The position numbers and the translations under genes are program-made. The notes under the pieces are model-generated. The model searched no databases. It was not told the DNA's origin and saw only the letters and a program-made list of their open reading frames with translations. Shown here piece by piece: positions 6,617 to 63,850 of a DNA stretch of 64,000 nucleotides; the stretch's first letter is position 1; each line of letters opens with the position of its first letter. Source of the DNA: Phaeosaccion multiseriatum (taxonomy: Eukaryota; Protista; Ochrophyta, other classes); assembly GCA_965112735.1 (NCBI GenBank), contig OZ218954.1, positions 620,001 through 684,000 of the forward strand. Direction: 5' to 3'.

Positions 6617-6652
<36 letters not shown>

Positions 6653-6963: not shown

Positions 6964-7485
6964 ACCATTATGCGACTCTCTCTTTCTCTCTCTTTACTCC
7001 ATCTGTCTTCTTGTTTCTGAATGAGTCAGGAGCCAGCGCGGTGGAACGGAGGAAGTATGCGTTTTCAAATCCGATGGAGGTTTGGCTTGGCGACGGCACC
7101 CCCCCTGGGCCATTCCCCTTTGTTTCACGTTGCGTATAGTGTAGAAAACTCACGATGGTAAGAGAAGAGAGAAGTGGGGCAGGACTTTGCGTATAGATGT
7201 GTGCTTGCTGCTTGTGTAGGGTTTGGGACATGTGATGGCGCCGAAAGACGGGGCAGTCGCTGAGTTTGTTTTAGAGAGGGAAGAGAGAAAATAGAGAGAG
7301 GAGGGAGGAGATGGATGTACAGTAAAGGATGAAGAAGCAGCACCACAAGCAGCAAAAGCCTCCTACTGCACTCGAGAATGAGGTCTTTGTCTTGCTCTTT
7401 GCGCATGCGCTGTCCCGCATGGCTAGACGTTTCGGCGTATTCTCTCCCTTACAGAGTTGACAGCGAGGGTGCAGTACCGCTTGGC

Positions 7486-8331
7486 ATGGTGGCTGCTCGG
7501 GGAGGACCGTTTGGTAGTATCTCCCCCCCCCCCTCTTTTATCTCTAACGGGCAAGCTCGGCTTGTTGTGCCCCTTGCCTTGCCTTCCCCTTGCCCCCTTC
7601 CCTCCCCTCCCTTCACCTCCCTCTCCACCCCCTCCTTCCACACCCGCTCCTTGCAGGCCTCTCTTGCACGCTCCGCTTTGCGCATCTCCTCCCGGGCCTC
7701 TACCCCTGCCCCCCCCTCCTTCGCCCGGCGAGCTATGTCTGGCGGAGGAGACGCAGCCTACCACCAAGAGCGAGTCAACCACTGGGCGAAGGTGTCTCTG
7801 GCGGGTATCGGCGCCATTGCTGTACTGTCGTGCACCAGCTTGTATATTGAGATTGAGCATCAGGAGCACAAGAAGCACCACCCGCATGAGGTACAGGGGA
7901 AGGAGGGAGTACCGTCCCTTTTCTTACTTGTACCCGTCATTGCTTTGCCCCTCCCCCCCTTCTTAACCCCCCCTCCGCCTACTGTTGTACTCTCTCTCGC
8001 TGCTTTCCTCGCCCTCTCTCTCTTTCGCTGCTTCCCCCCCCCCCTCTCTCTCACACACACACATCGCGTGTGTCCTCTCTGTCTCTCCTACAATACGCCA
8101 GCCACCCGCATTCTCCCACTTGAGGGTAAGCAGTCACAATACTATACTCTGGATGGCACTGGATGGCACTGGATAGGAGCAAGAGTAGGCAGTTGCTTTA
8201 CGCTCTAGAGCAAGTAGTAGGTACTTCGTGGTAGTAGGTTAAGGTGCGCCAAAGAGTGGACAGGACAGAGTGCAGAGAGAGAACGAGGAGAGGGACAGGG
8301 GGAACGAGCGAGAGTAGGAGAGAGAGAGAGC

Positions 8332-8363
<32 letters not shown>

Positions 8364-8833
8364 CCTTCACAGTATATGCTGCTTCGTGCAACAATCACGG
8401 TATGTCGCTCCGTGCGACCACGTCTTTGCGTGCGTTGCATTTTGCTCTATATGGAAGTGGTGAAAAGAGCAGAGGGCAACAACCGCCAAACACAGGCTCA
8501 CCTCGGCTCCATGGTAGACGCACGACTGCGACTCTAGGATTCGAGGGGGTCGATGTTCTAGGGAGTCCGTGCCTCCTGCCTGACGACCTCCTCCCCACAC
8601 TCCTCACCCTCCTCCTCGCTTTGTTCCCACTCACACTTATTCCTCTCCCCCCCCCCTCCGCCCCTCCCGGGACCTCTGTTCTCTGCATGTGTGTGTGCAC
8701 GTGTGTGCGTGTGTGCCACTCACAGATCCGCAGCAAGCCCTTCCCGTGGAAGTGCAGCGATTGCACATTCATTCCCTCCACAAAGGCCGACATGGAGTGC
8801 TACGCGCAGTGCATGGGTGGGGAGGAAGAATAA
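7486..8833 (+). CDS. COX6A: Cytochrome c oxidase subunit 6a
   Basis: Predicted exons 7486-7488 (ATG only), 7657-7890, 8102-8125, 8726-8833. Mitochondrial-type presequence MASLARSALRISSR, then HWAKVS + one TM helix, then PPAFSHLR-IRSKPFPW (COX6A signature). Confidence 0.85.
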
Positions 8834-9782
8834 GTCAGTGGACTTGGAAGAATAAGTCAGTGGACTTGAAGATTATGTCAGTGGACTTGGAGGATACGTA
8901 GACCTACGTATTATTGCCTCAGTGATTGCACTGTCGTTGGCTCCAAAGGTGAATGGGAGAGGAGGAGGAGGAGCAGAAGCAAGAGGGAAAAGAGGAGGAA
9001 GAAGAAGAAGAAGAAGAAGAAGAAGAAGAAGAAGAAGAAGAAGAAGAAGAAGAAGAAGATTAGGCCAGCAGCGGCCGGGCGGCGGGGCGGGGGGGGGGGG
9101 GGGGCAAAAGGGTGTGTATACGGTATATCGTACAGCGAAAGAAACGGGCGTGGGGAGAGGGGGAGGAGACATGGACATAAAAACGTCTAATACACAACAC
9201 TTTTTTAAAAGTAAACTGAACCATAGCAGCGGATGTGGAGAACAAGAAAGAACATGTCAAAGAAGGATCCTTTTTGGAAGTTCGTCCTCCTGTGCCATCA
9301 TCCTCTGTATTTCTTTGGGTACTCAAAGTGTTTAATTGGGGAAAGAAACATGAGTGAGCTTTTGCCGCCATAAAAGCTTTGTTATCACTTGCCACTTGCC
9401 TCCTCACCACCCTTCCTCTCAGCATCCCTCTTCCCAAGACAAGGTAGTGGGCCATGGGACCCACTCCCTCCTCCTCTTCCTTCCTTCACTACTACTCCAA
9501 GTAGTAGTACTGCTAGTTTCCCCCTCACTCTTCCTCCTCCTCCTCCTCCTCCTCCTCCTCCTCCTCCTCCTCCTCCTCCTCCTCCTCTTGACCGGGGCCA
9601 ATACGTAGGGGCCTATAAAAAAAATTCGAAATGCCTCCACCCCCCACCCCAACTAGACCCAACCTCTCCTTCATCTCCTTCACCTGAGCGCCCTCTTCGC
9701 TCAAACTCATACTACAGTTACAATAGTCAATTTTTCAATCCCCTAGTCACCCTAGTGCCTTCCTTACTCAAACTCAAAGATA

Positions 9783-11921
9783 TCACCGAGGCGTGGTGCT
9801 ACCCCTGCCCTCCTTCGCCTCCCTCGTCCGATCCATTAGCAGCAGGAAGATATTCTCCAGGATTTGGGCGTCTCTGTCCTTAGTTGACTCAAACGAAGTG
9901 CTCTTGCCGAACACCTCCCCCTCCTCCTCCTCCTCCTCCTCCGATCCACCAACCCCTCCAACCCCACCAACACCGGCACCGTCCTTCTTCTCCTTGTTCT
10001 TTCCCTTGGGGCTCTTGCTAGTAGTATTGTTCCTCTTGGGGCTTTTACTCTTTCCCCTCCCTCCTCCCCCATCCACTGCCATCTTCCTCGTCAGTGTCAC
10101 AACGAGCCCCTCTCGCTCTACTTTGGCAAGGTCTTTGAGCAAGATGGAGTTGTCCTTTCCCCCTCCAAGGAGCTTTTTGGAGCCCCAGGTGAGCTCGTTC
10201 TTCGCCTCGTTATAGCGGAGGACGCGCGGCACCTTTGCAAGCGACAAGAGGGAAGAGAGAGGGAGGGAGGGAGGGAGGGAGGGAGGGAGGGAGGGAGGGA
10301 GAGGGAGGGAGGGAGGGAGGGAGGGAGGGAGGGAGGGAGGGAGGGAGGGAGGGAGGGAGGGAGGGAGGGAGGGAGGGAGGGAGGGAGGGAGGGAGGGAGG
10401 GAGGGAGGGAGGGAGGGAGGGAGGGAGCGAGCGAGGGAGGGAGGGAGGGAGGGAGGGAGAGAGGGAGGGAGGGAGGGAGGGAGGGAGGGAGGGAGGGAGG
10501 GAGGGAGGAGAAGAGAAGATGGCAGTGGATGGGGAAGCGATGGGGGAGCGACAGACAAGGAGAACACCCAGTGAGTGAGAAGGGAAGGGTGAACCAATTG
10601 TTGAAAGCGAGCAGTCCCGTGGTGGGGTTCATCTCCCACGCCGTGGCGATGGCGGTGTGGTGAGGTGCTATCCGGCCTGCTCATACCCCCTCCCTCCCTC
10701 CCTCCCTCCCTCCCTCCCTCCCTCCCTCCCTCCCTCCCTCCCTCCCTCCCTCCCTCCCTCCCTCCCTCCCTCCCTCCCTCCCTCCCTCCCTCCCTCCCTC
10801 CCTCCCTCCCTCCCTCCCTCCCTCCCTCCCTCCCTCCCTCCCTCCCTCCCTTCCCCTCCCCTCTTCTCCCGTCCCTCTCCGTCACCCCTGCCCTTCCATT
10901 ATCTCCTCTTCTTCCTCCCCTCCCTCCCTCATGCCTGCCCTACCTTCTTGGGGGGCTTGTCCTTGTCCTTCTTGCTCGTGCCGCTCTTGCAGTGCTTCTG
11001 CAGCACCAGGCCGGGCCCGTTTTGCATCGTCGCTTTCAAGAACTTGTCAAGGACTTGGTCGTCCCATCGACTCGTCCCTCTCTTGGGCGTGACGGGTGAG
11101 GCGGGGGCCGTTACATTCTTCCGATCTCCACTCTTCTCGTTCTTGTTCTTCACATGTTGGTTGTTCTTGGGTGAGGACGACAAGTCCTTTCCTGCGATGA
11201 AGTCCGTGAAGCCCAATCCCTCTGCAGCAACGCCCGAGTCGGTTGTGTCTTTCTCCACGTCCGCGCCCTTCTTCTTCCCTGCGCTATTTGGCCTTTGCTG
11301 CCGTCGCTCCGCGCTGAGAGGACGAGAAGGAGGAGGAGGGGGAGAGGAGGTATCCCTATCTGCCCTATCACGCCTGCCTCCTTTGGGCGAGTAAGATGAT
11401 GATGTGACAGCAGCCCCTGGCAGATGTCGCCGGCTGGCACTGCTTCTTCTACTGCTACTGCCGGTGCTGCTTGGCCCATCCCGCTCTCCCCGTTCTACTC
11501 CTCCTCCTGCTCCTCCTCCCCCTCCTCCCGCCGCCATCTTGGGTGTCGCCGCAAAGCTCCGGCAAGCACTCTCGAGGTCACCAGGGTCAACGATGGTATC
11601 ATCCAGCCCCCCTTCCATCACCAAAGGAGGATCCCGTGTCCTATTCCCTAGCCCTTTCCGTTTGCCTTTCCCGCTTCTTCCTCCTCGTGATGATGGTGAG
11701 TGGTGGTCGTGGCGCTCGTCCACCTTGGTGACCGTACCGCTGTCATTGTCCACCACGAAATCGTAATTGTGCTCCTCCTCCCCCCCCTCCTCCCCCTCCT
11801 CCCCCGAATCCTCCCCCTCTTCATACTCGAAAGGCTCATCCGAGTCATCTATCATGCGACTCAGGTCTCCGTCCTCGCCGCAGCAAAACATTGAGTTAAT
11901 TCCATCCAAGATTGAGGCCAT
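9783..11921 (-). CDS. Hypothetical protein with low-complexity N-terminus and C-terminal PH-like domain
   Basis: Exons 11921-10944 and 10232-9783 joined in phase 0 across a (GGGA)n/(TCCC)n intron. LVLQKHCKSG...PKKVPRVLRYNEAKNELTWGSKK...SILLKDLAKVER...STSFES resembles PLC-type PH folds. N-terminal MFCC may be palmitoylated. Confidence 0.6.
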
Positions 11922-15012: not shown

Positions 15013-28926
<13,914 letters not shown>

Positions 28927-30088: not shown

Positions 30089-33000
30089 TTACCACTTACT
30101 CACAGCTGGCTTTTCACGGGTGGTGGTGCGGGTGCGGTGATTCACGTAGAAGTCCTCTCCGCTGTGGTATCAAAAGAGAGGGAGGGAGGGAGGGAGGGAA
30201 GGAGGGAGGGAGGAAGGAAGGAAGGAAGGAAGGAAGGAGTGAGTTAGGGATGTCATCAAATGCCAAGCGAAGCGTCAGGGGTCGAGTCATGACTGCATGC
30301 ATTAACCTGCTCTTCTCCTCCCTTTGCTTCCACCTTCCTTCATCCTGCCATCCATTCTCCCTCCTATCCACCCACGCACGCACCGACTATCCACGTCCAC
30401 CCTTTACCCACATACACACACACCCATGCACGCACCCACCCACCCACCCCCCCCCCCACTGTCCTGACACCAACCACCAACTCACGCGTTGTCTTTCTTG
30501 ACCTCGATATGCGCTGGCAGCACGTGGGGGTTAATCACGGGCCTCTCCCACGTGGTCTCCTGAGTAATTTCAGTTTCAGTTTCAGTGTCAGGGTCAGGGT
30601 CAGGGTCAGTTTCAGTTTCAGTGTGTTTAGGACCACATACGTACTGTCGTACAAAGCAGCCCAGCGACTGTCAATCAAGAGGCAGATATCAAACAAACGC
30701 CCGCGCTGTGGATGGACAGCTCAACACTCAAAGGCAGGTTCACACATCCGGGTGTGTGCCACTCACTCACTCACTCACTCACTCACCCCATTCGCTCCCT
30801 CCCCCCCCCTCAAGTCCACCTAAAACTCAAACTCACCTGCGTGACGTGATCCACGTAATATATCTTACCCCCTTCCGTCTCTTTGGTCTCAATGTACGGA
30901 GGCAGCCGCGCCGAGGGTGACGTGATGGACTGAATCGGCTGTCTGCTGCCATCGCCAGATGGTGATGAGAGGCCAGAGGAGGCCCCCGGGGCCACGGGCG
31001 CAGGCATCTCCCACGTGGTTTGGTGGGTTTGGTGGTTGACGAAGTAGGGCCTTCCCTCGGGCGTCAGGCGCTTTTCGATATGGGAGGGGAGGTAAGATTC
31101 TTCCGTGGTCAGCGGCACCTGAGGAAGAGGGGGGGGGACGGGAGGGGGGGGGGGCGGGAGGCGGACAGAAAGAGGAGGAGAGGGTTTTGCACGCAATGAG
31201 AGTTGTCTCGCCCTTCCCACACGCACACACACACACACACACATACACACACGCACACACATACACCCACCCAGCCACACACACACACACGCACGCACGC
31301 ACACACAAGCATACACACACACGCACGCACGCACGCACATACACACACACACACATACACACACATACACATACCCAACCACACACACACGCACGCACAC
31401 ACCTTTGTGCGGCTGCGGGAAGCCATCGCGGCTCCTCCAGGGGGGTTCCAAGAAGACACCTGCATCCGTTTCAGTTTCAGTTGAGTTTGTTAGATAGACC
31501 TCACTCACGAATGCAACGACACGCATCAAAATGAGGATTATGCAATATTTCGATAATATCGAATGCTCTGCTTCCGACTCAGCTCTGGATCTCTTGATTT
31601 GTTCGATACGTACACGTCGACATACCGACAAAGTACCGAGGTCGACATAGAGTATCGAGGTCTTCCACAAAACTGAAACTGAAACTCACTTTTGTGTTGT
31701 GATCGAGGTAGTACGGGGTGCCATCAGGCAGGGTCCGTTTCTCCACATGGGATGGCAGCTGGGAAGTTGGTGATACGGCGGCGGCGGGAGGAGGAGGGGG
31801 GGCGGACGGGCTGGGGGGGGCAGCAGCAGCAGTTGGTTCTTCGGCGGCGTTGGCAACGTCGGGTCTCTCCCACGTGGTTGTCTTTTGGAGGGAGGGGGGA
31901 GGAGGAGGGCGAGGAGGGAGGGAGGGGGAGAAGGAGGAGGGGGAGGAGGAGGAGGAGGAGAGGGGAGGAGGCAAATCAAAGCCAGCAATTGATCACTGGC
32001 GGGTACGAACTTCTCTTCCTCGTTGCTCTGCATGGGCGTTGCGTTAACGAGTTGCGCCGTTAACGAGGGCGCCTGTACCACCAACACAACCCCTCAACCA
32101 CCACCCACAACTGGCGCACCACCACCACAACAACTGGCGTATACAGTTATACCACCAACTGTCGTACCTTTGTGCGATGGTTGAGGTAGTAGACCCTCCC
32201 GTCCTGCGTCCGTTTCTCCTCTATGGAGTCCGGGAGAGCTCCTGCACGTCCACTGCCATCCCCACCCTGCTGCTTCTCTTCGCCCTCCTTCTTCGGGGAA
32301 GGTGCCAACGCCGCAGCACCGGCAGCGAGATGGGCGGCGGAAGAAGAGTAGGCAGAGGAAGAGGGTCGGCGAGGGGGAGAGGGGGAAGGGGAGGGAGAGG
32401 GAGAGGGAGAGGGAGAGGGAGAGGTGCTACCGGGGTACTCCCACTGCGTCTTGCGGAGATTGTGCGATACGTAGTAGATCCTGCAGGGGGGGATGGCAGT
32501 GGATGGCAGTGGATGGCAGTGGATGGCGGTGTGACGGGGTGGGTAGGTGAGTGGGTAGGTGAGTGGGTGGATGTGGGTGGGCGGCTGTGGGCGAATCACT
32601 TGCTGCTACGCCATTCTGACTCTTCCCCTGCGTCATCCATCTCTTGCTGACTCATCGCCCCCTCCTCTTCGGTGATTCCTCATATATATATATATATACA
32701 AATAAGTCCATGAACATTCACTCACCGCCCTCCCGAAGTGATGCGCTGCTCCCATCCCGGGGGCAGGTCCTTTTCTTTCTCCTTCATGGCCTGATTGATT
32801 GATTTTGAATGATTGATTTGTTTCAGTTGTCAATTTCGGTGTCAGGAAGAGGCAAGGTCAACACACATCGATGCCATTACAGTGCAGAGAGTGGATGGTG
32901 AATTGGATGGCAGCAGATGGTTTAACTCGATGGTAGTGGATGGTTAATTGGATTGCAGCACATGCTTAATAAGACGGCAGTGGATGGTGAATTGGAAGGC

Positions 33001-33670
33001 AGTAGACGCTCATTGGATGGCAGTGGATGGTGAACTGGATGGCAGCAGACGGTTTGAGCATTGCAATCGAGGAAAGCTCCCTCTTACCAGGCGACTCGCG
33101 ACGACGCTGGGGTGTTCCCAAGAGGTGGTCATGCCGATGTGGTCAATGTAGTACCTGGTGTCAGCCCAAACCCCCCCCCAAACACACACACACACGCACA
33201 CACATACACACATAACACACACACACACACGCACATACACACACGCACACACACACACGCACACACACACGCACATACACACACGCACACACACACACAC
33301 ACACACACATAACACACACACACACACGCACATACACACACACACACACATAACACACACACACACACGAAAGAGAGATGTCAGTGCAGAGGTGTGTCAG
33401 AAGTCAGCAGAACGTACACACATCTACACAAGGAAGAAAAGGCACACACAGAGAGAAGTGTCCTCACCTTCTGCCGCCTTCAGTGTACTTGGCCTCCCAG
33501 CCGGGTGGGAGGTTCTCCAGCTCCAGCACGGGATTCAAAAAGGCCTCCTGCTGTTGAACAGTGACGACGGGGGGGTCCCACTGCGATCGACGACAGCGAG
33601 AGGGGAGGGAAGGAGGGAGAGAGAGGGAGAGGGAGAGAGAGGGAGAGGGAGGGGAGAGAGAGAGAAGGGG

Positions 33671-36700: not shown

Positions 36701-39700
36701 GAAATACGAACCCTCCTCCGAACACAAACAGCGCGCCAGCCAGCACCTGACAGCAGTTGGGTGAGTGGGTGTGAGTGTGGGTGTGAGTGGGTGGGTGTAG
36801 GTGGGTGGGTAGGTGGGTGGGTGTGTAGGTGAGTGGGGGTGTGTAGGTGAGTGGGGGTGGGCGGATGTGTGGGTGGATGTGAATGGGCGATAAGAGTGTG
36901 GGTAGGGCATGAGTGTGGATGTGGGTGGGTGGGTTTGGGTGTGGGTGTGGGTGTGAGTGTGTGGGTGGGTGTGGGTGGGTGGGTGTGTGTGTGTGGGTGT
37001 GTGTGTGTAAGAGAGTCGGAGTGGGCGGATGTGTGGGTGGGTGGGTGGGTGTGGGTGCGTGGGGGTGGGTATATGTGATTGGGCGATGAGAGTGTGGGTA
37101 GGGGATGAGTGGGTGAGTGAGTGAGTTAATGAGGCCAAAAGGGAGGGAGGGAGGGAGAGGGCTGAAACTCAAACTCAAACTCAAGTGGCTCAGAGGGTGC
37201 CCATGCCTTCCTCTCCCTCCCTCCCTTCCTCCGTCCCTCCCTCCCTTCTCCTAACCTCGTAGGTGGTAACAAGTGAGCTCTGCGAGTTGGTCCACCGCCC
37301 GTCGTCGCCAGTTGGCGATAAAACCGCCTCTGCCGCACTCAGCGTAGCCCCCTGGGAGCAGTAGAAGAACGAGCAGTCCGCCTGCGTGTGTGTTTGCGTG
37401 TGCGTGCGTGTGTGTGTGTGTAGGGGGGGTGGGTGGGTCGGTGTGTGGGTGACAGTTCGTATGAGGTGGTACCAGGAAGGGATTGAAATTGACTGACAAA
37501 CTGACTGACTGAATGAAGGACTGACTGACTGACTGACTGGGTGACTGACTGACTGAAGGACTGACTGACTGACTGATTCACTATCCACCTAAAACCAATT
37601 GACCACTGCCCTGACTGCCTGACTCACAAATGACAAACACTGACCTTGACTGCTCGGCTCTCGTAGGGCCAATTGGCAAAGAAGACCCGCGTGATGAGGA
37701 GGTGGACCCACACAGAAACAATGAGGTAGAATCTGTTGGTGCCATTTGGGGGGGGGGGGAGGGGGGGATGGAAGGCAGTGGATGGGGTGAGGGAGGAGGG
37801 AGAAGAGAAGACAAGCAAGCGGGGTGAGGGAAGGGGTGGATGGCAGTGGATGGGAGAGGGCCACCCACCTGGACTGCTGCGCCAAGCTCTCGTCAAAGTA
37901 CGGAGCTCTCCTCCACAGGCGGAACAGACTGTATTTGTCCACCCAGTACGTCGTCACCTGGGCATGGCAAGTAGAGGCATATGGGACATCATGTTAGAGG
38001 CATATGGAGGGGAATGTAGAGGCAAATGGTGATCTGGGCATGCCAAGTTGAGGCTTATGGAGCAATGTAGGAGCATACGGGGGGAGGGGGGGTTGGGTAT
38101 GTAGAGGCATATGGGTGTGTGTGGTGACCTGGGCATGCTGGATAGAGGCATATGAGACATTTAAGAGGAATATGGTGACCGGGGCATGCTAGATAGAGGC
38201 ATATGAGACATCATGTTAGAGGTATATGGTGACCTGGGCATGCCAAGTAGAGGCGTACGGGGGCATGTAGGTTGTGTCCACGCGTTGAGCTATATGTTCC
38301 ACAATCTTGCGTTCCACCTTTTGCCATGTCTTGAGCTTGAGTATAACCTAACGAACTCAACCTCAAACTCACCATGGCGGCCGTGGTGACGAAGAGTCCC
38401 GTGGGTACGAGGGCGGAGTAGAAGAGGCCCACAAAGATGGTCTTGACCATGTCTGTGTAACGCTCTGCCAGGTTCCAAATGGCGCCCTGTGAGTGAGTGG
38501 ATGTGGAGTGGGTGAGGATGGGGGTAGTGGGTGTCGAGGGAGGGAGGCAGGAAAGGAGGGAGGGAGGGAGGGAGAGAAGGAGGGAAGGGAGAAGGAGAGG
38601 GAGGGAGTGAGGGGAGAAGGACAGGGAGGGAAGGAGGGACGGAAAGGCGTATGGTCAGGAGCACGCACACACACAGGAGTGACGTACAGTTCGATCGTTT
38701 GTTTGTCTTGTGTTGGTGGCGCAGGGGGGTGCACTCACTCACTCACTCACTGACTCACCCACTCACTTAGTCACTCACACACTGACCACTGCCTCTCCCC
38801 CTTCCTCACTCCCTCACTCACTCACTCCCTGTCCTGACACCCACTCACCTGGAAGAATACGTTCATTTCTGCCTGAGTTTTTGCCTGAGTGAGGCAGAGT
38901 GCCACGAAGTCCACAAGAGACATCAGCAAGCAAAGCAAGCAAAGCACGCGAAGCACATGAAAGACAATTAAAAACCCCACAGCCCAGCAAAGGCAACGGC
39001 AAGGGCAAAGACAAAAAAGCAGGTAAGCCAGGTAGGTACGGCAAGGAGCCGGGCAGTTTCAGCTTGACTTTCAGATTATGGACCTCCCATCCAGTGAGGT
39101 CGAAATGATTGATGAATGCGAGAGAGATGGACCCGTTCACTGCCATCATCCACTCCATCCACCCACTGCCGTCCATCCATCCCGCCTATCTACTGCCATC
39201 CATCATCACCTGCGGGGCGAAGAACTTCCTCATTCCCCAATCGTAAAGGTTGAGCACACGGAGCACAGGGGTGGTGAAGGCATCCGCAATGAGGATGGAC
39301 ATGACCTGAAGAGATGGCAGTGGATGGAAGAAATGGCAATGGATGGAAAGAATGGTAGTGGATGGGAGGGATGGCAATGGATGATAGGTGAGCACACGGA
39401 GCACAGGGGTGGTGAAGGCATCCGCAATGAGGATGGACATGACCTGAAGAGATGGCAGTGGATGGAAGAAATGGCAATGGATGGAAAGAATGGTAGTGGA
39501 TGGGAGGGATGGCAATGGATGATAGGTGAGCACACGGAGCACAGGGGTGGTGAAGGCATCCGCAATGAGGATGGACATGACCTGAAGAGATGGAAGTGGA
39601 TGGCAGTGAACGGGAGGGATGGCAATGGATGGAAAGAATGGCAGTGGATGGTAGGTGAGTACAGGGCAGTGAATTGGTGTGAGAAGGGGCGGATGACAGT

Positions 39701-42700
39701 GGATGGGAGCCTTATGAAGGATGGACAGGACCCCAAGAGATGGCAGTGGATGGCAGTGAATGGGCGTGACTACATGGGGGAGGTAAATGGGATGGCAGTG
39801 GACGGTTCTGGATGTGAGGTTGGGGGGGTAGTATACGTGGGAGGTGGGTGGATGGCAGTGGATGGCAGTGCACCTACACACCTGATTGAGGGTTGCGGGG
39901 TCCAGCGTGTCAACATACTTGGTACCAATGTAAATGAGCAGCGCAGAGTTGATCATTCGAGCCACTGTGAGCTTGAGCATCATGCTGCTCTGTGTGTCTG
40001 TACGGGACTTGTGAGACTCCAGCATCAACGTCACGTTCTATTGTGGCCACACGTAGGCACACATAGGCACACACACGCACACACACACACACACACACGC
40101 ATGCACATACACGCACGCACACACACGCACACACACACGGGGAGGGAGGGGGGGTATATAGATGGATGGATACACAGAGACAGAGGGGAGAGAGAGAGAG
40201 GAGAGAAAGGTTAGGGCTAAGGTCTCGTACGCACACTGATCCACACAAACAAAAAGATACACAAGCACGCGGCAAAAGTCCCCCCCCTAAACCCCTTTAT
40301 ACTTCCCTTCTTATCCCCCCCCTTCCACCTCCCCCACCTCCTCCTCCTCCTCCTCCTCTCCGACCTCACCTTAATCACAATGGGAAGGCCAGCGTTAACG
40401 AGCGAGATGAACACCGCGGCTCCGGCGTTGGAGTCGTTGGGGATGGCGAGAGTCACAAAGAAGGACGCGAGAAGAAGGCAGCCGCAGACTGGGCCGGGGA
40501 GGGATGGCAGTGGATGGATGGGGTGGGATGGGATGGCAGTGGATGGAGTACGGTACAGAACAAAGGCCAAGAGGAGAAGAGTGAGAGAGGCAGAGAGAGA
40601 GAGGCAGGAGAGAGGTAGAGAGAGAGAGAGGCAGAGAGAGAGGCAGGGAGAGGAGAATCGGCAAGTGAGTGGGGGCAAGCCGCACTAGCGCTGAGGGAGT
40701 GAGACATACACAGGCACACAGAAAAGAGGCAACGAGGGAGAACGGTGCAGAGAGAGAGAAAAAAAGCGAGCAAGGGAGCGAGAGAAGGGAGAGAAAGGGA
40801 CAGAGAAAGAGAGAGACCCACGGAAAGACACACAGAGATAGAGTGTGCATACGTGCGCGTGTTGGTTGTACACACCGAAGAGGCTGGCTAAGAACCACAT
40901 GAGGCGGTGCGTCTTGGAGAGATGGAGGTTCTCCCACACCATGGAGTTGGGCTCCTGCGCCTCTGTGATGTTCAGCACCTGTTGGTGATTCGGGGGGTGG
41001 TGATTCAATCCAAATGGCATGGCACACGACGGATGGCAGTGGATGGACGAAGGCGAATAGTTTTTTGAGTGAGTGAGTTTACTCGAGGTCGAGAGAGAGA
41101 GATAGACCGCCGGGGGGGGGTGGAAGAGAGGGAGAGAAAGAGAGGGGAAGAGAGAGATGGAGAGATGGAGAGGGTGAGAGAGGGGGAGAGAGAGAGGGAG
41201 AGAGCGAGAGGGAGAGAGAGAAAGAGAGAGAGGGAGAGAGAGAGCCCTTCTCACCTTGCCCTCGAACACGCTTTTGGTGTTGCTCTCGCGATGCTTGTTG
41301 AACTTCTCCTCCAGAATGCCTGGCAGGGAGGGAGGGAGGCGGGGAGGGAGGGAGGGAGGGAAGGAGGGTGGGAGGGAGGGAGGGAGGGAGGGAGGGAGGG
41401 ACGGAGGGATGGATGGAGGGAGGGAGGGAGGGAGCAAGGAAGGAAGGAAGGGAGGCAGGGGGTAATGAAGGAAGGTATCTTGGTGGGCCCCGTCTCAGGC
41501 AGGATTGAGGCAAAGCAAAGGTAAGACCTTCAATTCGTACAAAAAAAGGCACAGAGGCAGGCAGGCAGGCAGACAGGTCGACATACACACAGACAGACAG
41601 ACAGACACACAGATAGACAGACAGACAGACAGACAGGTAGGTAGGTTCGGACCTGACACCCATCCGCCCTTCAATCTCTGAGGCAGCGGCGCTAGAAGAC
41701 CTCCCTGTCCTGACACCCATTACTCTGTCCTGACACCCATTACTCTGTCCTGACACCCGTTACTCTGTCCTGACACCCATTACTCTGTCCTGACACCCAT
41801 TACTGTCCTGACACCCATTACTCTGTCCTGACACCCATTACTCTGTCCTGACACCCACCCGTCTCGCAGTCTCTGATGCAGCGGCGCTGAGACACCTCCT
41901 TGTTGAAGGTGATGCACACACGCCTGGGGGAGTAGTCCTGTGTTTTCAGGCCCTGGGGATGGCAGTGGATGGGAGGGGGGATCGGAGGGGGGATGGGAGG
42001 GGGATGGCAGTGGATGGGAGAGGACGGCAGTTTATGGGGAATGATGTGATAGAGGATGGCAGTTGATGGAGGTTGCGGGATGCTACAGCTGGCGACGGAG
42101 AGTGGGGTGGCCGCGGATGGGAGAGGATGGCAGTGGATGGTATATGGGGGGGGGGGGGTCGGGGAGGGGGGAGAACGCTACAAGGGAAACGCACGTAGCG
42201 TAACGTTTACGTACTACACACGCACGTACGTACTGCTTACGTAATGCTACCGTACGTACCACGATCCTGGCCTCGACGACCTTCAAGGCCCCCTCCAGAT
42301 ACTCCACATTTTCAAAGTAACCGAAGGGCTGAAGCCTTCGCTTCCACATTGGCATGAGAGCTTGCGTTTCGCTCACTTGCAGGAACCGCTCCACACGGCT
42401 CTTCTTCGCCTTCGCGACCTGGAGTGGGTGTCAGGACCGTGGGTGGGTGGGTGTCAGGACAGTAGGTGGGTGGGTGTCGGGACAGTGGGTGGGTGTCAGG
42501 ACAGTGAGTGGGTGTCAGGACAGTGGAGTGTCAGGACAGTGAGTGGGTGGGTGTCAGGACAGTGGGTGGGTGGTGTCAGGACAGTGGGTGGGTGCGTGTC
42601 AGGACAGTGGGTGGTGGCAGGACAGTGGGTATCGGGAAAAATGGTGTCAGGACCGTGAGTAACCCCACCCACCTTCTCTGCCTCCCTGTCCGTCACGGTC

Positions 42701-47800: not shown

Positions 47801-48564
47801 AGGAGGAGCAGCAGGAGGAGAGGATGATGATGGTCTTGCTTGTAAACTGCTCACGCACTCCGAAATCAGTTCTCGAAGATGTCTATATTTCATGTAGGAC
47901 GGCAGGTATAAATATATGAGGAAAGCGTTTCTGCCCGCTTGGGTTTGTGAGGCTGGGCAAGAAACCCGTAGGAGGGCGTGCTGCTCACATGTGATGATAA
48001 GATGCTCTGAAGTGCTCTGCCTGCACTGTCTCGTGGGGGTTCGGCGGAGGGTTGTAGGTCCCTGTCTGTTGCCGAACCCAATGTCGATTTCGGATACCGA
48101 CCTCGGCCTCGCTATCGATTTCGGATATCGACATTGATATTGATGATATCGAGTCGATAGAGATAGAACAGGGACCTCCCCTCTTCCGCACCCAACATGG
48201 TGCATGGACGGGACAGAGGAAGCAAGAAGACAATGCTGTCTAAGGAGTAGAGCTACATGCAACACACTGAAAGACGCCTCACTGCCCCCCTCCTACTGCC
48301 ACCCACGGTCGTCCCCGGCCCCACCCCGATGGGTTACGGTTTCATTTTGGTCCGACGGTGTCTGACGGGCTACGGTTTCATTTTGTTCCGACGGTTTCTT
48401 CCGCCCCCCGCTTGGGTTCGGCTTGGGTTCGGCAGCCCTCCCAGGTTCCGCTTTCCTAAGGACAGTACCTGCCGCCTTAGCCGCCAGTTTCATGCTTTCC
48501 TGCACACTTTCTCTCAGTTTGTGCTAAAGAGGAGAGAGCGAGCTGTTCACAGTGCTTGCGGGTT

Positions 48565-51500
48565 ATGAATGCGACAAAAGTGTTGAATGTGCTCAAAGGG
48601 CAGCGCAGAATACTCACCGCCTTCTTCCACGCCACGGGCGGACCCGATTGGGATAACCAGACAGTAAGGAACGAGAAGGACCTTCCTGTGTGGAAATGGT
48701 CCGGAGTGAGGGTAGAGAATGGCTATGTAGTGGAGCTTCAACTGCGATGGAAGAAACTCAAAGGTGAGAGAGACGTAGGTCTCTACAGTGTTCGGGAAGG
48801 ACGGAGCAGAGCCGAGCGAGAGAAAGCGTGAGCCAGCGGCATCTGACACAATCTTCCATTCGCGTTCCTTGAACTCAGTTTAAAGCGTTTCCCTCCCATC
48901 CTTAGGGAGCATTCCACCCGAGCTCGGAGCTCTGGAGAACCTTGTGGGACTGGCCCTCGACAGGAACGAGCTCACAGGTGCGCGAGCCCCTTCGCGTCCC
49001 TTCCCTTTCACTTGATATGAGTATGACCAAAAAAACTTTCCTTCAATACTCAGGGAGCATTCCACCCGAGCTTGGAAGTCTGGAGAAGCTTGTCTATTTG
49101 GACCTCTCTGACAACGAGCTCATTGGTAAGTGGCACGCGTACCCGTTCGCGTCCCTTGGACTCGATCTCAGTGTGACCAAATAACGTTCCCTCCGATACA
49201 TAGGTCCTATTCCCGCTGCCCTCATTGGGCGTTTGGGAATACAGATCACCAGTTACAGGTTCGAGGAGAATGCGTTGAGTCTTCCTGAAGACATCAACAC
49301 CCAAACACATCTGACCAAGCTCGATTTATCCCGTCAGGGCCTTGTAGGTAGGTGGGACGCGTCCCTTTGACTTGATATCACTCTGGCCAAAAGTCATTCC
49401 TCCAAGCTAACCCCAGCCAGGGAGCATTCCTCGCGAAATTGGAGGGCTGCGAGAACTTGCTTGAGAGTTTGCCCCTCTTTTGCAGCTACCTCAGTGGTAG
49501 ACTAAGTGTACACGTACCCGTCCGCGCCTCTATCAAATGACCGAAAGAACTCTCCTCCCATCCGCAGGGAGCATTCCCAAGGAGTTGGGAGGTCTTCAAA
49601 ACCTTCAGCAACTACGACTCCGCGAGAACAAGCTCACCGGTGAGTGGTACGCACACCGTTCGCGTCCCTTTCACTTGATATGAGTGTAAACACAAGAATT
49701 CCCCTCCCATCCTTAGGGAGCATTCCACCCGAGCTCGGAGCTCTGGAGAAGCTTGAAGAATTGGCCCTCAACGTGAACGAGCTCACAGGTGCGCGAACCC
49801 CTTCGCGTCCCTTCCCTTTCACTTGATATGAGTGTGACCAAAAAAACTTTCCTTCAATACTCAGGGAGCATTCCACCCGAGCTTGGAAGTCTGGAGAAGC
49901 TTGACTATTTGGACCTCTCCGACAACGAGCTCATTGGTAAGTGGCACCCGTACCCGTTCGCGTCCCTTGGACTCGATCTCAGTGTGACCAAATATCGTTC
50001 CCTCCGATACATAGGTCCTATTCCCGCTGCCCTCATTGGGCGTTTGGGAACCCAGATCACCATTTACGAGTTCACGAAGAGGAGAGGTTCATTTATAGCC
50101 GACAGCAATGCGTTAAGTCTTCCTGAAGACATCGGCACCCAGACACATCTGACTGAGCTCGATTTGTCCGATCAGGGCCTTGTAGGTAGGTGGGACGCGT
50201 CCCTTTGACTTGATATCAGTCTGGCCAAAAGTCATTGTTCCTCCCAGCCAACCCCAGCCAGGCAGGGAGCATTCCTCGCGAGATTGGAGGGCTGCGAGAA
50301 CTTGAGAGTCTGCCCAACACCCTCTTTTGCAGCCACCTCAGTGGTAGACTAAGTGTACACGTACCCGTCCGCGCCTCTATCAAATGACCGAAAGAACTCT
50401 CCTCCCATCTGCAGGAAACATTCCCAAGGAGTTGGGAGGTCTTCAAAACCTTCAGCAGCTACATCTCGGCCAGAACAGCCTCACGGGTGAGTGGTACGCG
50501 TACCCGTTCGCATCCCTTTCATTTGATACTAGTGTGACCGAAAGAACTTTCCTCCCATCTGCAGGAAACATTCCCAAGGAGTTGGGAGGTCTTCAAAACC
50601 TTCAGCAGCTACATCTCGGCCAGAACAGCCTCACGGGTGAGTGGTACGCGTACCCGTTCGCATCCCTTTCATTTGATACTAGTGTGACCGAAAGAACTCT
50701 CCTCCCATCTGCAGGAACCATTCCCAAGGAGTTGGGAGGTCTTCAAAACCTTCAGCAACTACGACTCAGCGAGAACGAGCTCACAGGTGAGTGGTAAGCG
50801 CACCCGTTCGCGTCTCTTTCACTTGATATGAGTATAACCAAAAGAATTTTCCTCCCATCCGCAGGGAGCATTCCACCCGAGCTTGGAAGTCTGGGGAAGC
50901 TCGAGGGTTTCGACTTCTCCAACAACAAGCTCACTGGTGCGTGGTAGGCGCACCCCTTCGCGTCCCTTTCAATGATATGAGTATAACCAAAAGAGCTCCT
51001 ATCCGCAGGGAGCATTCCACCCGAGCTTGGAAGTCTGGAGAAGCTCGAGATGTTGCACTTCTCCGACAACGAGCTCACCGGTGAGTGGTGCGCGAAGCGT
51101 TCGCTTCCATTTGTCTTGATACTCCCCGGAGGGTGTCGTGAACACGCATGGATGCGGAGGCCCTCTGTGCCTACTACTACCTGCTTGCTCTCATATCTGT
51201 GGGCCCTCTGTGCCTACTACCTGTTTGCTTTCATGTCTGCTGCCACGTACCCCAGTATACTTGTGCCCCATTTAACGTGACTCTGTCTCTCCTCATCGTT
51301 GCTTGTCTCGGGGGGTTGGAATGATTGGTCCGGCCTTGCTTACAGAGTTTCCGGCCGTGGTGGCAGAGAAGCTCGGACCTCTAAATTTGCTCGAGAGGCT
51401 TTCCACATCCGGCAACCCATGGTCTAGCCCCCCTGGGGATGTCGTGGCGCAAGGGTGGGAGGCGATCATGGCATGGTGGAGAGACATCGAGGCCTCGGGC

Positions 51501-54500
51501 TCCGTCAAGTCCAGCAAGGTCAAGGTGGTGCTCGTCGGTGCTGGCACGGCGGGGAAGACGAGTCTGATAAGGGCAGTCACCGGCAAAGGGGAGGATCTCC
51601 CCACAGAAAAGGAGCGGACCATCGGGGTGGAGCGGAGGAAGACAGTGCGGGTCTCTGACTGCTTCAAGAGGCACTACCCTATTGGCGGGGTGGAGAAGTA
51701 CCTGGAAGGGCTGGCGGCTGAGGAAGAGGCACGAGCGGCGATTCGGGCAACGGCACAGGACCTCGGCTTGGTAATGTGGGACTTTGCCGGGCAGGAAGCG
51801 TACTTCAGCCACCACCAGACCTTCCTCACCGCCCACGCGCTCTACGTGCTCGTCGTGGACCTGCCCGCCTTCCTGGAGAGGGACAGTGAGGCGCGGGATG
51901 CAGCAGTACACCAAGTGGTGCATGACGACTTCGCCCACGAGCAGGAGATCTCGCTTTGGCTGAGCATGCTCGACATGCGAGTGAAGGACTGTCACGTGGT
52001 GGTTGTGGCGACGAAGACGGGCGGGATGACCGACAAGGAAAGGATGCTCGGTCAGAAGCGGGTTACGGAAGCAGTCACGGCCGCAGCCACGCGACTGAAC
52101 AAACGGAGGGAGGAGTCCGCCAGGGCGCGGAAAGTAAAGGGTTCCTCAGGCGTCACTGTTTTAAAGTGTGCGGATGGTCAGCAAGTCGCTGTGCTGATGG
52201 ACAGTAAGGAGAAGTGTGGTGTCGGAGAGGTGTTGCTGCAGTTTACGAGAGCTGTGCACGACAAGCCTATCGCCTTCCCCAGTGTGGGTGCGTCTATACC
52301 GAAGAGCTGGAGCGAGGCTATGGACTTCCTCCAAACACAGGCCGAGGCCCGCAGCTTCGTGGCGTGGAGTGAGGTGGTGCAGGAGTGGGAAAAGCGGAAG
52401 GAGGCAGAGGAGGCAAGCAGCCTTCTAGGGGAGGAGTCCCCCATGCTTACAAAGGGAGAAGGGATGAAGGAAGGAGGAGGAACCCCTGAGCAGATACTGA
52501 GGCAAGCGGCGTATCTCCTGGAGCGGCAGGGGACGATGCTCTTCACCAACGGGAAGGTAGTGCTGCACCTCAAGCCGGAGAGGATCATTGACCTTCTCAA
52601 GCCCATCGCAGACCACCGCATCACGACGGAGGGGAGGGCCTTCTGGAAGCCCAGGATGAAGGACTACTTGACAGAGACCGGCGAGTGGAGCTCACGGGCG
52701 ACAGAGGAATTGTTGAGAAAGTTCTTTGAGCTTCAGGACTTGGGCATCCTGAACGAACAAGTGCTCGACTTTCTGTGGCTGGCGTGGACACCGAGTGGAA
52801 ACGAGGGGAGGAGGGGCAGCAGCAGCAGCACCAGCAGCAGCAGCAGCGGCACCAGCTCGACACTCGAAGGGCGGCAGGCCCAAGTCACGGCTGAAGAGGG
52901 CTCCTTTCTCTCCGAGTTGCGGGGCCAGGATCAACACGCCCAAAACAAGCGGAAACTCATGCGCCGGCTGCTGGTGGAGAGCGGGGCGCTTTATGCACAT
53001 CTCGACGAAGCCAAGAGCGGGAAGGAGGAGGTGGAGGAAAAGAGCGGGAAGGGAAAGGTCGAGGTTGGGAAGACTCGATACTGTGCTCCTTCTCTGCTCG
53101 AAGCCTGGGTGGACCAAGGGGAGCTTCAGACGGCTTTCTACCTCTCCACAGGGCAGAAGATGAGCCGACTCTCCATCTCCATGCCTGGTCAGCCCTTCAT
53201 TCCGCCCGGCCTCATGCCTCGCATTGTGGCGGCGTGTATGAGGGAGGCTGAGCGCGACAGTATTGAGTCCCGTGGGTCTTGCCGAGTGACCTTGTGCTGG
53301 CGCTATGGCGTTGTGCTTTACTGGGGCACCGAAAGAGTGCTCATTTACCACTCAAAGGCAAGCATCAAGGAAAGCAGCAGCATCGGCCCCTCGAGCACGA
53401 AAGATAACCACCGGAGGCAAAGCCACCAACGCCGCAACAGCAACGCTGGCTCAAACAGCAGCAGCAGCAACAGCAGAGGCAGCGTCGCGGGGGGCGGGGC
53501 TGTCGTAGAGTGGTGTGTTCTCGGAGACAACGCCGGCATGTGCGATGCGAAAGCGAATGGCGTCGTGCGCGAGTGCGTGTTGGATGTCATGGATACCAAC
53601 TTCAAAGGGATGGACTATGAAGAGGACTTGCCCGACGAAACCAAGTGCACGATAAAGGCCGCGCTGCACTCGCTGGAGCAGCACATAGATGTCCGCCTGG
53701 ACATCATCGAGAGCAAAGTGGACGGGATTGTGGAGGCGACCCGAGGCATCGAGAGCTTCATCCGCTTGAGCTGCGAAAAGGACATGCCGTACCCTGCCCT
53801 CGCGGTGCTTCTCCCGGAGGGACATCCAATGCTGAGCAACGGAGGATTCGCGGGTGCTGAGGAGGGAAAGAACACACCTCCGGGGGGTGGAGGCAACCAC
53901 CAAAAGGGTCTCGATCTCTACCAGAAGCGAACGTGGGAGTGGGCCAAAAGGAAAGCGGTTAACACTGTGGCTAGGAAGTACCGCCTCTTCTTTCTGTGCT
54001 CGCACGACCTTAGTTTGGTGCCCACTGGGCCAGACGGGAAGGGATACGAGGTGCCCATGCCCAAAGAATGGCTCAAGAAGGCCGCACCCTTGCTTAAGCT
54101 GTCGCTGCTGGCCCTCAAGGTCGCCGCCAACTGTACTCTGCGCATTGATCTGCCTATTGACGGACTCTTTGAGGCTCTGAACGAGACTGTTGTGGAAGGA
54201 ATGAGCGAGAAGATCGCAGAGCGCATCGATGAAGCTTTCACGGGGGTGGACGCCTCGCTAGACCGCATCATGCAAGAGGCGATGCAAGCGACCCACGCCC
54301 CTCCAAAGGGGGAGGAGGATGGAGGAGATAGGAAGCTGCGGCAGCCCTTCTCTCGTGAGGGCGTCGACTTCGGGCCCGCTTACGACGCGTATCTGGCCTT
54401 CCTCAAGGCGAAGGTGCCTGTGCTGGACAAGGCCCATCACGGCACGAATATGGTGCTTTTGAAGGGAGGCACCGAGGACTCGTGGGCGTGGGTGAGGAAG

Positions 54501-54735
54501 GCAAATGCGAAGGAATGGGAGAAGACACACGATGGCACAGGCGCAAGAGCACAAAGTGCGGACAGTGGTGGTGGTGCTTTCGCGCCTTCGGCCCTCAATG
54601 GGGCTGCTGACAGCGTCGTAGGAGGAGGAGGGGGAGGAGGAGGAGGAGGAGGAGGAGGAGGAGGAGGAGGAGGAGGAGGAGGAGGAGGAGGAGGAGGAGG
54701 AGGAGGAGGAGGAGGAGGAGGAGGAGGAGGAGGAG

Positions 54736-54770
<35 letters not shown>

Positions 54771-55531
54771 GGAGGAGGAGGAGGAGGAGGAGGAGGAGGA
54801 GGAGGAGGAGGAGGAGGAGGAGGAGGAGGAGGAGGAGGAGGAGGAGGCCAAATTGATGGTGTTGTGGCGGCAGCAGCGGGCTCACCGACCCCTCCACCTC
54901 AGGAACATCAGCAGGCGGGGACAGGAGGAGCTCCGACCGGAGAAGAGGGGGAGGGGCAGGACATTCGGAGGTGGCTGCAGGAGGTGAGCTTCATCGCCAA
55001 GAGAATCGACCCCGTGGTGCAGCTGCTCGTGAGTGAGGACTGCGACTCCCTGGAAATGCTTGACAGCTTCGACTCGGACGACCTAAAAAAACTTTGCTGA
55101 AGGAGGCAGGCATCCTCCAAAAGGGTTCCATGAGTTCGTTCATGACACACTTTGAGCGTCGGAAGGAGCGGGCAAGGAGTCATGAGCGCAGCGGCGTTTC
55201 TCCTCCCTCTCCTTCTCAAGGGACCGCACGGCCGCTGTCGCGTGACGAGCCACCGATGGCTACGGCCACGCTGCGCCTGTCGCAGTCGGACACTACGGTG
55301 GGGGTGGAGACGCCCCCCGCGAGTGGAGCAATTGGGGGACCAGCAGCAGCAGTTGATGGTACAGCAGCAGCAGCGGGAGGCCACTCTGACTTAGATACTT
55401 GTTCTTCTGCTCCGTATGAGAAGGCCGACGGGGGTGGCATCTTGCGAAGGTTATCTCGTACCATCAGGGGACCCAGAGGAGGAGGAGGAGGAGGAGGAGA
55501 AGGGAAAGTATTTGTCGCAGCGGAGGAGTAA
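48565..55531 (+). CDS. LRR-Roc-COR (ROCO) GTPase without kinase domain; C-terminal SAM-like segment interrupted by a frameshift
   Basis: LRR N-cap exon 48565-48763 (AFFHATGGPDW...WSGVRVENGYVVELQL), 14 LRR cassettes 48906-51080, large exon from 51346. Contains GNPWSSPP, P-loop GAGTAGKTS, RTIGV, WDFAGQEAYFSHHQTFL, a COR-like region and YRLFFLCSHD...GYEVPMPKEWLKKAAP. Stop at 55100; the -1 frame continues to 55531. Confidence 0.9.
48890..51090 (+). repeat. Tandem LRR exon-intron cassette array (unit ~150 bp; ~811-bp five-cassette block duplicated)
   Basis: 72-nt phase-1 exons at 48906, 49054, 49568, 49717, 49865, 50415, 50565, 50715, 50865, 51009. Longer cassettes at 49204 (144 nt) and 50015 (171 nt). 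Degenerate cassettes at 49421 and 50266. Introns share the consensus gtgagtggtacgcgtacccgttcgcgtccctttcacttgatatgagtgtgacc...cctcccatccgcag. Confidence 0.95.
49421..49496 (+). pseudogene. Inactivated LRR cassette (pseudo-exon)
   Basis: 76 nt rather than 72 because of a CTTG duplication (gaaCTTGCTTGagag). It reads GSIPREIGGLRELA-stop and has a weak donor, GTAGAC. Confidence 0.8.
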
Positions 55532-63144: not shown

Positions 63145-63850
63145 CTGCTCGTACGCATCGCATTGTCGGAGGTTGGCAGCTCCAAGCACCTGGGCAGGAC
63201 AGGGGATGGCAGTGGATGGGTGGGCAGTGTTGGTGTGAGTATCAGCCCGGTCGTATGAGTGCAGAGGATGGTAGTGGATGGATCCATGTCAGTGTCAGAG
63301 GATGGTAGTGGATGGGTCCGTGTCAGTGCCAGTCTCAGTAAAAGATGGAAAGCGAAAGGTGCATGTAGGCATGTTAGTGACTAAGAAGGAGGTCACTTTC
63401 AGTGACTCATGTCGACATTTTGGTGACTTATTACGCACCATGGTGTCCAGGGCATCCTTTGGGGGCTCTTGCCATCGCGCGGAGAGGGCCGCGTATTGAA
63501 TAACCTTAAGGGGGGGGGGTCGGTGGATGGCAGTGGATGGGAGTAGATGGCAGTGGATGGCAGTGGACGGTAGTGGATGGCAGAGGATGGAGGTGGATGG
63601 CAGAGGATGGGCGGGCCCGACGTGGGCGGAGGGGGGGGGGATAAGTAAGCAGCCTCAATTTCGATTTCTTCCAAATGTCGAGCTCAATTCTCAGTGTCTA
63701 TTTGGACCAAGTAAACTTTGACTTCGACCCCAATCCTGAGCTTAAAGTCGACCTACCTCATGTCGCTTCCACTTATTAAACACGACGCAATCGTCCTGTA
63801 TGGCCATCTTGTTGAGTGTCAATGTACCCGTCTTGTCGGAGCAGAGCACG
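57438..63850 (-). CDS. P3A-type plasma-membrane H+-ATPase, 5' part outside the window
   Basis: [15 protein letters not shown] (~63850), [19 protein letters not shown]...[96 protein letters not shown]; stop at 57438. Confidence 0.95.

Follow-up and report, generated by a model that had tools for sequence, protein, structure and literature searches.

The stretch of DNA analysed here, called the window throughout, comprises 64,000 nucleotides (nt) of contig OZ218954.1 from Phaeosaccion multiseriatum and contains a ROCO gene whose leucine-rich repeats (LRRs) are encoded by a tandem array of short exon cassettes. A single gene can be read on the plus strand from 48565 to 55100, with the cassette array upstream and the exon for the Roc and COR domains last. 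Exon 1 (48565-48763) contributes the ATG and an LRR N-terminal cap in 66 codons plus one base, ending in phase 1, and is separated by the 142-nt intron I1 (48764-48905) from 14 short LRR exons, designated E2 to E15. These are followed by intron I15 (51081-51345; 265 nt) and by a terminal exon of 3755 nt (51346-55100), entered in phase 1, that encodes Roc, COR, a conserved C-terminal domain and two glycine runs before a TGA at 55098-55100. About 170 nt upstream of the ATG lies a 36-nt direct repeat in 1.9 copies (48331-48399).

Single-repeat exons and their homologous introns

Ten of the 14 cassettes are exactly 72 nt long and specify one 24-residue repeat each, of the form GxIPxELGxLxxLxxLxLxxNxLT. 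A preliminary description of the locus, drawn from the letters alone, had arrived at the same count, and both the coordinates and the splice sites bear it out. From 5' to 3', the array consists of a first block of four cassettes with their introns (E2-E5 and I2-I5; 48906-49567), a single cassette and intron (E6 and I6; 49568-49716), a second copy of the block (E7-E10 and I7-I10; 49717-50414), three tandem exon-plus-intron units of 150 nt (E11/I11, E12/I12 and E13/I13; 50415-50864) and a closing segment of E14, I14 and E15 (50865-51080). The 72-nt exons are E2 (48906-48977), E3 (49054-49125), E6 (49568-49639), E7 (49717-49788), E8 (49865-49936), E11 to E13 (starting at 50415, 50565 and 50715), E14 (50865-50936) and E15 (51009-51080). 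The remaining four are E4 (49204-49347; 144 nt), E5 (49421-49496; 76 nt and broken), E9 (50015-50185; 171 nt, longer than E4 by an in-frame insertion of 27 nt) and E10 (50266-50343; 78 nt). An exon and its intron of about 76 nt together form a repeating unit of about 150 nt. Two types of exon can be told apart, a P-type reading GSIPPELG.. and a K-type reading G.IPKELGG..; E6 is of the K-type, and E14 and E15 are P-type exons set in K-type-like introns.

All cassettes start in phase 1, with the glycine codon of the GxIP motif split after its first base (G/GN). The 72-nt cassettes are bordered by AG/G acceptors and G/GT donors, their 3' ends reading ...CTCAC(N)G/GT, and GT..AG sites are present on every cassette, each exon opening with G(G/A/T)N directly after the AG. 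The earlier claim that every cassette is of phase 1-1 holds for 13 of the 14 and fails for E5, which measures 76 nt, or 73 nt with an alternative donor. Compared with its twin E10, E5 carries a 4-nt insertion and a 6-nt deletion that produce a frameshift and an in-frame TGA, and its inclusion brings the first stop at codon 177. A full-length open reading frame (ORF) requires E5 to be skipped because of this frameshift and stop; a transcript spliced past it would carry an ORF of 5067 nt (1688 residues) ending in a single stop, and the LRR arc then amounts to about 15 repeats coded in 2.5 kb of genomic DNA. Rescue of E5 by alternative splice sites was considered and rejected, since with either candidate donor the exon length is 1 mod 3 and the TGA precedes the two donors.

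The 13 introns within the array (I2-I14) are 71-80 nt long and, in line with the preliminary description, mutually homologous: they align over their full length and match in nhmmer searches, and their consensus is well defined over most of that length, the middle included and not just the ends. Pairs that do not stem from recent duplication among I2, I3, I6-I8 and I11-I14 are 60-86% identical; the pairs I4/I9 and I5/I10 are more diverged, with 36-65% identity to the other introns. Two nhmmer profiles, one built from the 72-nt exons and one from nine introns (I2, I3, I6-I8 and I11-I14), were run over both strands of the window. All members of the array were matched, the 72-nt exons and the nine profile introns with E values of 1e-18 to 1e-24, and E5, E10, I4, I5, I9 and I10 with E values of 1e-7 to 6e-9. 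The homology also reaches into the flanking introns: the 3' half of the array introns has a homologue in the last ~50 nt of I1 (48856-48905; nhmmer E 0.0017), and their 5' half has one in the first ~42 nt of I15 (nhmmer). Such homology at the edges is expected if an ancestral intron-exon-intron unit was amplified in tandem. Apart from the array itself and these inner ends of the flanking introns, neither profile matched anything on either strand of the 64 kb. No orphan cassettes were detected on either strand of the window by nhmmer, and none lies in reverse orientation or inside an intron within the array, where introns of 71-80 nt leave no room for them.

Tandem repeats with a period of at most 12 nt cover 22.7% of the window, whereas the LRR array is free of microsatellites, as had been observed before for its introns; apart from the tandem array at 1-3531, no stretch without such repeats is longer than 48434-52815, in which the LRR array and the Roc exon lie. 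Ordinary splicing probably accounts for the motifs at the intron ends, GTGAGTGG on the 5' side and a CTCCTCCCATCYGCAG tract on the 3' side. A search of the introns for conserved RNA structure with RNAalifold gave no consensus pairs, and four of five single introns fold no better than shuffled sequences, the exception being I2. An introner-like dispersed intron family was also entertained and set aside, since the intron profile found nothing in the 64 kb outside the array and the adjoining ends of its two flanking introns. Within I15, 40 nt are duplicated in tandem (51159-51239).

The encoded protein and its relatives

The large exon encodes a ROCO GTPase, as had been proposed at the outset. 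Pfam Roc matches with an E value of 7e-12, and sequence matches in the PDB include the Roco proteins of M. barkeri and C. tepidum and the Roc domain of LRRK2. The Pfam COR model is silent on this exon, as it is on 93 of 111 ROCOs of brown algae (PMC11378527). A RocCOR fold is predicted by an AlphaFold model built on 13 relatives, with LRRK1, LRRK2 and the C. tepidum structures 6hlu (LRR-Roc-COR) and 3dpu (RocCOR) as its best matches (E 2.5e-12 to 2e-9, ~700 aligned columns). The G1 motif (GAGTAGKTS) and the G3 motif (DFAGQ, conforming to DxxGQ) are intact. No signal peptide was found by eye, and a crude hydropathy scan gave one marginal window of 19 residues and no membrane segment; the protein is therefore taken as cytosolic. 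In-frame runs of 42 glycine codons (54621-54746) and 28 glycine codons (54765-54848) form a coding microsatellite, in a region without homology to the relatives.

The named top relatives of the Roc-COR region come from Chrysoparadoxa australica, Hapterophycus, Cladosiphon, Ectocarpus, Pylaiella and Nemacystus. An exhaustive protein search returned no Roc-COR relative above 37% identity and a word-index search one weak match, while two pattern scans of metagenomes for sister loci, one using an intron motif and the other an exon motif, gave 0 matches. In a Roc-COR tree of 26 rows, a comparison with Ectocarpus that the preliminary description had suggested, the window sequence nests with brown-algal and Chrysoparadoxa ROCOs. 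It falls within a 13-row clade (support of 95 in the Shimodaira-Hasegawa-like approximate likelihood ratio test, SH-aLRT) that holds every brown-algal and Chrysoparadoxa row and leaves out amphioxus MASL1, a pelagophyte protein and other environmental sequences, and its sister is a Chrysoparadoxa protein (support 89). The resemblance extends to both ends of the protein: the N-cap from exon 1 matches the N-termini of brown-algal ROCOs (BLASTP 5e-6 to 5e-5), and the C-terminal domain that follows COR has a homologue in Chrysoparadoxa (E 1e-14) and, weakly, in Ectocarpus.

Brown-algal LRR-ROCOs with 'type I LRR exons' are known from Ectocarpus (Zambounis et al. 2012, PMC3341825) and make up groups 1 and 2 of Teng et al. 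2024 (PMC11378527), in whose account nucleotides 3-71 of the LRR exon code for 23 residues (PMC11378527). The symmetric 72-nt exons of the window agree with both studies, so that the earlier parallel with one LRR per exon in Ectocarpus stands. Compared directly, a locus of Ectocarpus sp. 6 (locus L001, protein P0007) shares with the window gene the 72-nt LRR exons, the ag/G...G/gtgag borders, the split G/GN glycine codon and the CAG/GTGAG donors. In this one Ectocarpus locus, however, the introns are ~345-485 nt long, compared with 71-80 nt, and share short patches only, some of them inverted, whereas the window introns are colinear over their whole length. The Ectocarpus locus also differs in having LRR cassettes on the reverse strand within its introns, which are absent from the window array. 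Such reverse-strand cassettes occur in and around the ROCO introns of that locus over its positions 2130-10641, as in Zambounis et al., and its last LRR exon is preceded by a 6.4-kb intron.

The best Roc-COR match is to Chrysoparadoxa australica CAM9859843.1 (protein P0002, locus L002; E 2.7e-42, 37% identity), which is also the sister of the window sequence in the tree. The annotated protein is devoid of the LRR part, yet upstream of its annotated start lies a 72-nt cassette of the same phase with the GTGAGTGG donor. The two genes also join the last LRR exon to the Roc exon at the same point, VFP...NPW..PP in Chrysoparadoxa corresponding to EFP...NPW..PP in the window. Unlike the window gene, the Chrysoparadoxa locus shows one visible cassette, the contig ending there, and has a 243-nt intron before the Roc exon. 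Because exon length, phase and boundary are identical, the Roc exon junction is shared and the Roc-COR clade is common, the window gene is best regarded, on sequence grounds, as a member by descent of the family that Zambounis et al. (2012) and Teng et al. (2024) described and not as a case of convergence. The preliminary description had spoken of an 'equivalent' system, a term that gives way here to membership of the same family.

Duplication and mosaicism in the array

The array has been reshaped at more than one scale. A repeat search and Tandem Repeats Finder (TRF) detect the block duplication as 300 nt at 95% identity with an offset of 811 nt and 135 nt at 91% with an offset of 838 nt, and across the two block copies the offset ranges from 811 to 847 nt. 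The duplication at ~811 bp had been described as a block of five cassettes; it is real, though it covers four cassettes and ~50 nt, the first two thirds, of a fifth, with its right-hand breakpoint inside the E6/E11 exon. The triplication of a 150-bp unit at 50415, 50565 and 50715 was likewise correctly noted. Units 1 and 2 (E11/I11 and E12/I12) are separated by a single difference, T or C at 50549, and 23 of the 150 positions distinguish unit 3 from unit 2. Identities of 99% and 95% between units justify calling the array recently active, as had been claimed.

Divergence between the two block copies is concentrated in the exons. Introns I2-I5 and I7-I10 mismatch at 8 of 298 sites (2.7%), compared with 27 of 288 sites (9.4%) for exons E2-E4 and E7-E9 (Fisher p = 7e-4), and E4 and E9 differ by a 27-nt in-frame indel in addition to substitutions. 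The excess is patchy, with 8 mismatches over the 72 sites of E2/E7, 17 over the 144 of E4/E9 and just 2 over the 72 of E3/E8. All five amino-acid changes between E2 and E7 fall on LRR positions 12, 14, 15, 19 and 20, and across the array the number of residue types per LRR column peaks at positions 14, 15, 17, 19 and 20. Nei-Gojobori estimates for the block copies give proportions of synonymous (pS) and nonsynonymous (pN) differences of 0.114 and 0.087, pS also lying above the intron divergence. The placement of the changes and the contrast with the introns suggest positive selection, short of a formal test. In alignments inspected by eye, no donor for the variable patch of E2/E7 was evident within the array. 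The contrast between introns and exons may mean either that the introns are constrained or converted, or that the exons are patchily replaced or selected, alternatives that one locus does not separate.

Exons and introns also disagree in their histories. P-type and K-type exons are 55-68% identical overall and 38-67% identical at third codon positions (38-58% without E2), whereas the introns that flank them are 59-86% identical, above the identity of the exons. For instance, E13 and E14 differ at 7 of 12 codons for the same residue, yet both of their flanking introns are 83% identical. Where units 13 and 8 differ, E14 agrees with E8 at 23 sites and with E13 at 2, whereas the intron downstream of E14 matches I13 at 17 sites and I8 at 1 (Fisher p = 5e-7); other triples point in the same direction. 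This disagreement implies recombination at the scale of cassettes. Taken as a whole, these patterns show unequal crossing-over together with short-tract conversion, with breakpoints both at and within cassettes, and such change is exon shuffling as the term is understood for brown algae.

Outside the ROCO gene, the window contains a class IV aminotransferase ORF on the minus strand (5482-6963), with its best matches in Phaeothamnion, Tribonema and Chrysoparadoxa at 42-46% identity. Together with the relatives of the ROCO gene, these matches place the host as an ochrophyte near the Phaeophyceae-Xanthophyceae group. The N-terminus of the aminotransferase is signal-peptide-like and ends in ...STYA/F, presumably the mark of a complex-plastid signal peptide. 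Two long ORFs on the plus strand (17168-19279 and 19894-21126) have EF-hand matches. Positions 1-2991 are occupied by a tandem array with a 24-nt period in ~125 copies (TRF periods 48, 72 and 120); its minus strand holds more than 1000 open codons, reading (ETPTPVAV)n and running off the start of the window, and this frame may represent a repetitive protein rich in proline and threonine. The 10-mer TGGATGGCAG (reverse complement CTGCCATCCA) occurs in 23 exact copies in the 64 kb, against ~0.1 expected, and often in short degenerate runs (e.g. 63520-63610, 39597-39859 and 32500-33036), in the manner of a dispersed minisatellite-like motif. Rfam and tRNA scans of the whole window gave no matches.

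A probable renewable receptor array, rival readings and known counterparts

With the gene structure, its homology, the duplications, the mosaicism and the exon-biased divergence in hand, the locus probably encodes a cytosolic LRR-Roc-COR GTPase of the brown-algal type I ROCO family whose array is renewed by germline recombination. Unequal crossing-over and short-tract gene conversion among the ~150-nt units would bring about this germline change. Its products would be the very recent unit duplication (E11/E12), the older block duplication (E2-E5 and E7-E10), mosaic units whose exons and introns have differing closest relatives, and a dead cassette, E5, which a full-length product has to leave out. 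After the block was duplicated, exons preferentially took up substitutions, which in E2/E7 lie at the x positions of LxxLxLxxN on the concave ligand face. The LRR arc could bind a variable ligand and signal through Roc-COR and the conserved C-terminal domain, cassette number and identity being tuned by recombination and possibly by exon skipping, and the role of the receptor may lie in immunity. It is a doubtful further step that the short introns are kept alike by selection or repeated conversion, as homology tracts or splicing signals for cassette exchange or choice. If true, a compact-genome relative of the brown algae would possess an active diversity-generating receptor, operating through programmed exon-scale conversion or regulated combinatorial skipping, with a 150-nt unit short enough for amplicon sequencing to track.

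Several points weigh against the reading as a renewable receptor. Skipping of E5 and use of every other cassette are assumed from the sequence, the tree draws on top hits only from a quick search and is rooted at the midpoint, and the AlphaFold model has a mean predicted local distance difference test score (pLDDT) of 56 and a predicted template modelling score (pTM) of 0.64. The triple highlighted in the mosaic test was picked after the identity table had been inspected, and the ratio of nonsynonymous to synonymous divergence (dN/dS) between the blocks is ~0.8, not above 1. In the G4 motif of Roc (52008-52019), TKTG takes the place of the [TS][HK]xD of the relatives, so that the aspartate for guanine specificity is missing. 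Finally, the stop codon of the ORF stands just 3' of an A7 run (~55085-55091), and an open frame of 145 codons extends from 55094 to 55531 in another frame. The broken E5, the replaced G4 aspartate and the stop just after the A7 run could mean that the locus is partly decayed. Taken further, these three features, the dN/dS value and the many Ectocarpus ROCO loci classed as pseudogenes (PMC3341825) would fit a locus that is a pseudogene or is becoming one, its tidy cassettes being the passive residue of unequal crossing-over. Such an outcome is unlikely although not negligible: the 5067 nt that remain without E5 are free of internal stops across the 3.75-kb exon and 13 cassettes, all GT..AG sites are intact and so are the P-loop and DxxGQ. 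Moreover, inactivated cassettes are normal inside otherwise expressed ROCO genes of Ectocarpus (PMC3341825), and one Ectocarpus relative also departs from the G4 consensus (NQRE), likewise lacking the aspartate. Pfam gave no match for the tail of the ROCO protein, for the frame after the A7 run or for both read as one across an X, and the pieces had no matches among the relatives compared. A SAM-like reading of the tail joined to that frame was dropped, being without support from Pfam or relatives, and the frame itself may reflect a homopolymer indel or chance.

Diversity could also arise in the transcript, through regulated skipping of symmetric cassettes directed by signals in the short introns, so that one gene would yield many LRR arcs. 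Indeed, the intact cassettes are all multiples of 3 nt in phase 1 and any skip keeps the frame, the full-length product already needs one skip, the introns are more conserved than synonymous sites, and up to nine splice variants are annotated for Ectocarpus ROCOs with type I LRR exons (PMC11378527). However, neither conserved RNA structure nor complementary docking and selector pairs were found in the introns, and the conserved ends GTGAGTGG and CTCCTCCCATCYGCAG are likely ordinary splice signals, though the middle is conserved too; this route is quite unlikely to be the principal one. A further concern is that the block duplication or the 150-nt triplication was misassembled from a shorter array, since tandem arrays are prone to copy-number errors and E11/I11 and E12/I12 differ once in 150 nt. 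For the E11/E12 pair such an artefact is possible, but it is unlikely for the block duplication and the third unit because their copies differ at many sites, the blocks by 38 substitutions (aligned E2-E5 and I2-I5), the 27-nt in-frame indel and several small indels, and the third unit by its 23 positions, differences that duplicated reads could not generate; as an account of the array as a whole it is very improbable. The least probable account is somatic rearrangement of cassettes generating receptor diversity within an individual, as raised for Ectocarpus, which would be credible to a minimal degree at best. The mosaic units and a permissive architecture of symmetric exons and homologous introns are all that favours it, but a germline assembly contains the mosaics as fixed features, and ordinary recombination, whether meiotic or mitotic, accounts for them. 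In addition, the cassettes are spliced exons of a complete gene instead of promoterless donors, the 64 kb hold no orphan cassettes on either strand, and no report exists of brown-algal ROCO loci recombined in somatic cells (PMC11378527).

A ROCO with one LRR per exon has so far been treated as a brown-algal speciality tied to multicellular defence, and a 2024 survey found this architecture without a strong relationship to other SAR (stramenopile, alveolate and rhizarian) lineages (PMC11378527). The same exon length, phase, boundary and Roc-COR clade in a non-brown ochrophyte, with a trace in Chrysoparadoxa, place the origin of the architecture before that of the brown algae. What is new is its occurrence outside that group in a compact form, with colinearly homologous introns and a measurable discordance between exons and introns; it extends a known family of candidate immune receptors rather than adding a new kind of system. 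Slow introns, fast exons and mosaic units offer quantifiable signs of cassette-scale exchange. As the 15 LRRs fit into 2.5 kb, a single amplicon would be enough to follow variation in the array, its splicing and any somatic alteration.

Among systems in which an array of interchangeable, frame-neutral modules codes for a binding surface, arthropod Dscam and the lamprey variable lymphocyte receptors (VLRs) resemble the window gene. Unlike in Dscam, no docking and selector RNA pairing was found in the window introns (RNAalifold and shuffles), and unlike the flanking donor cassettes of VLRs, the window cassettes look like constitutive exons of a complete gene, with no evidence that they are chosen in a mutually exclusive way or copied somatically. 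Prokaryotic Roco proteins and animal LRRK1, LRRK2 and MASL1 share with the window protein a Roc-COR tandem fold after the LRRs. The LRRs of the window are, in contrast, of the plant-specific type, the protein has neither a kinase nor any other output domain known from LRRK proteins, and this group lies outside the clade of brown-algal and Chrysoparadoxa ROCOs in the tree. With the brown-algal ROCOs with type I LRR exons, the likeness is one of detail. The window host, unlike Ectocarpus, is not a brown alga, but the order LRR-Roc-COR is the same, and each 72-nt exon codes for one 24-residue plant-type LRR. Inactivated cassettes are known from the Ectocarpus genes, and the window array has one, E5, on the coding strand. 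In both, Pfam COR is usually silent, the N-cap and the C-terminal region are homologous, and variation is greatest at LRR positions 15, 17, 19 and 20, the sites found to be under positive selection in Ectocarpus (PMC3341825).

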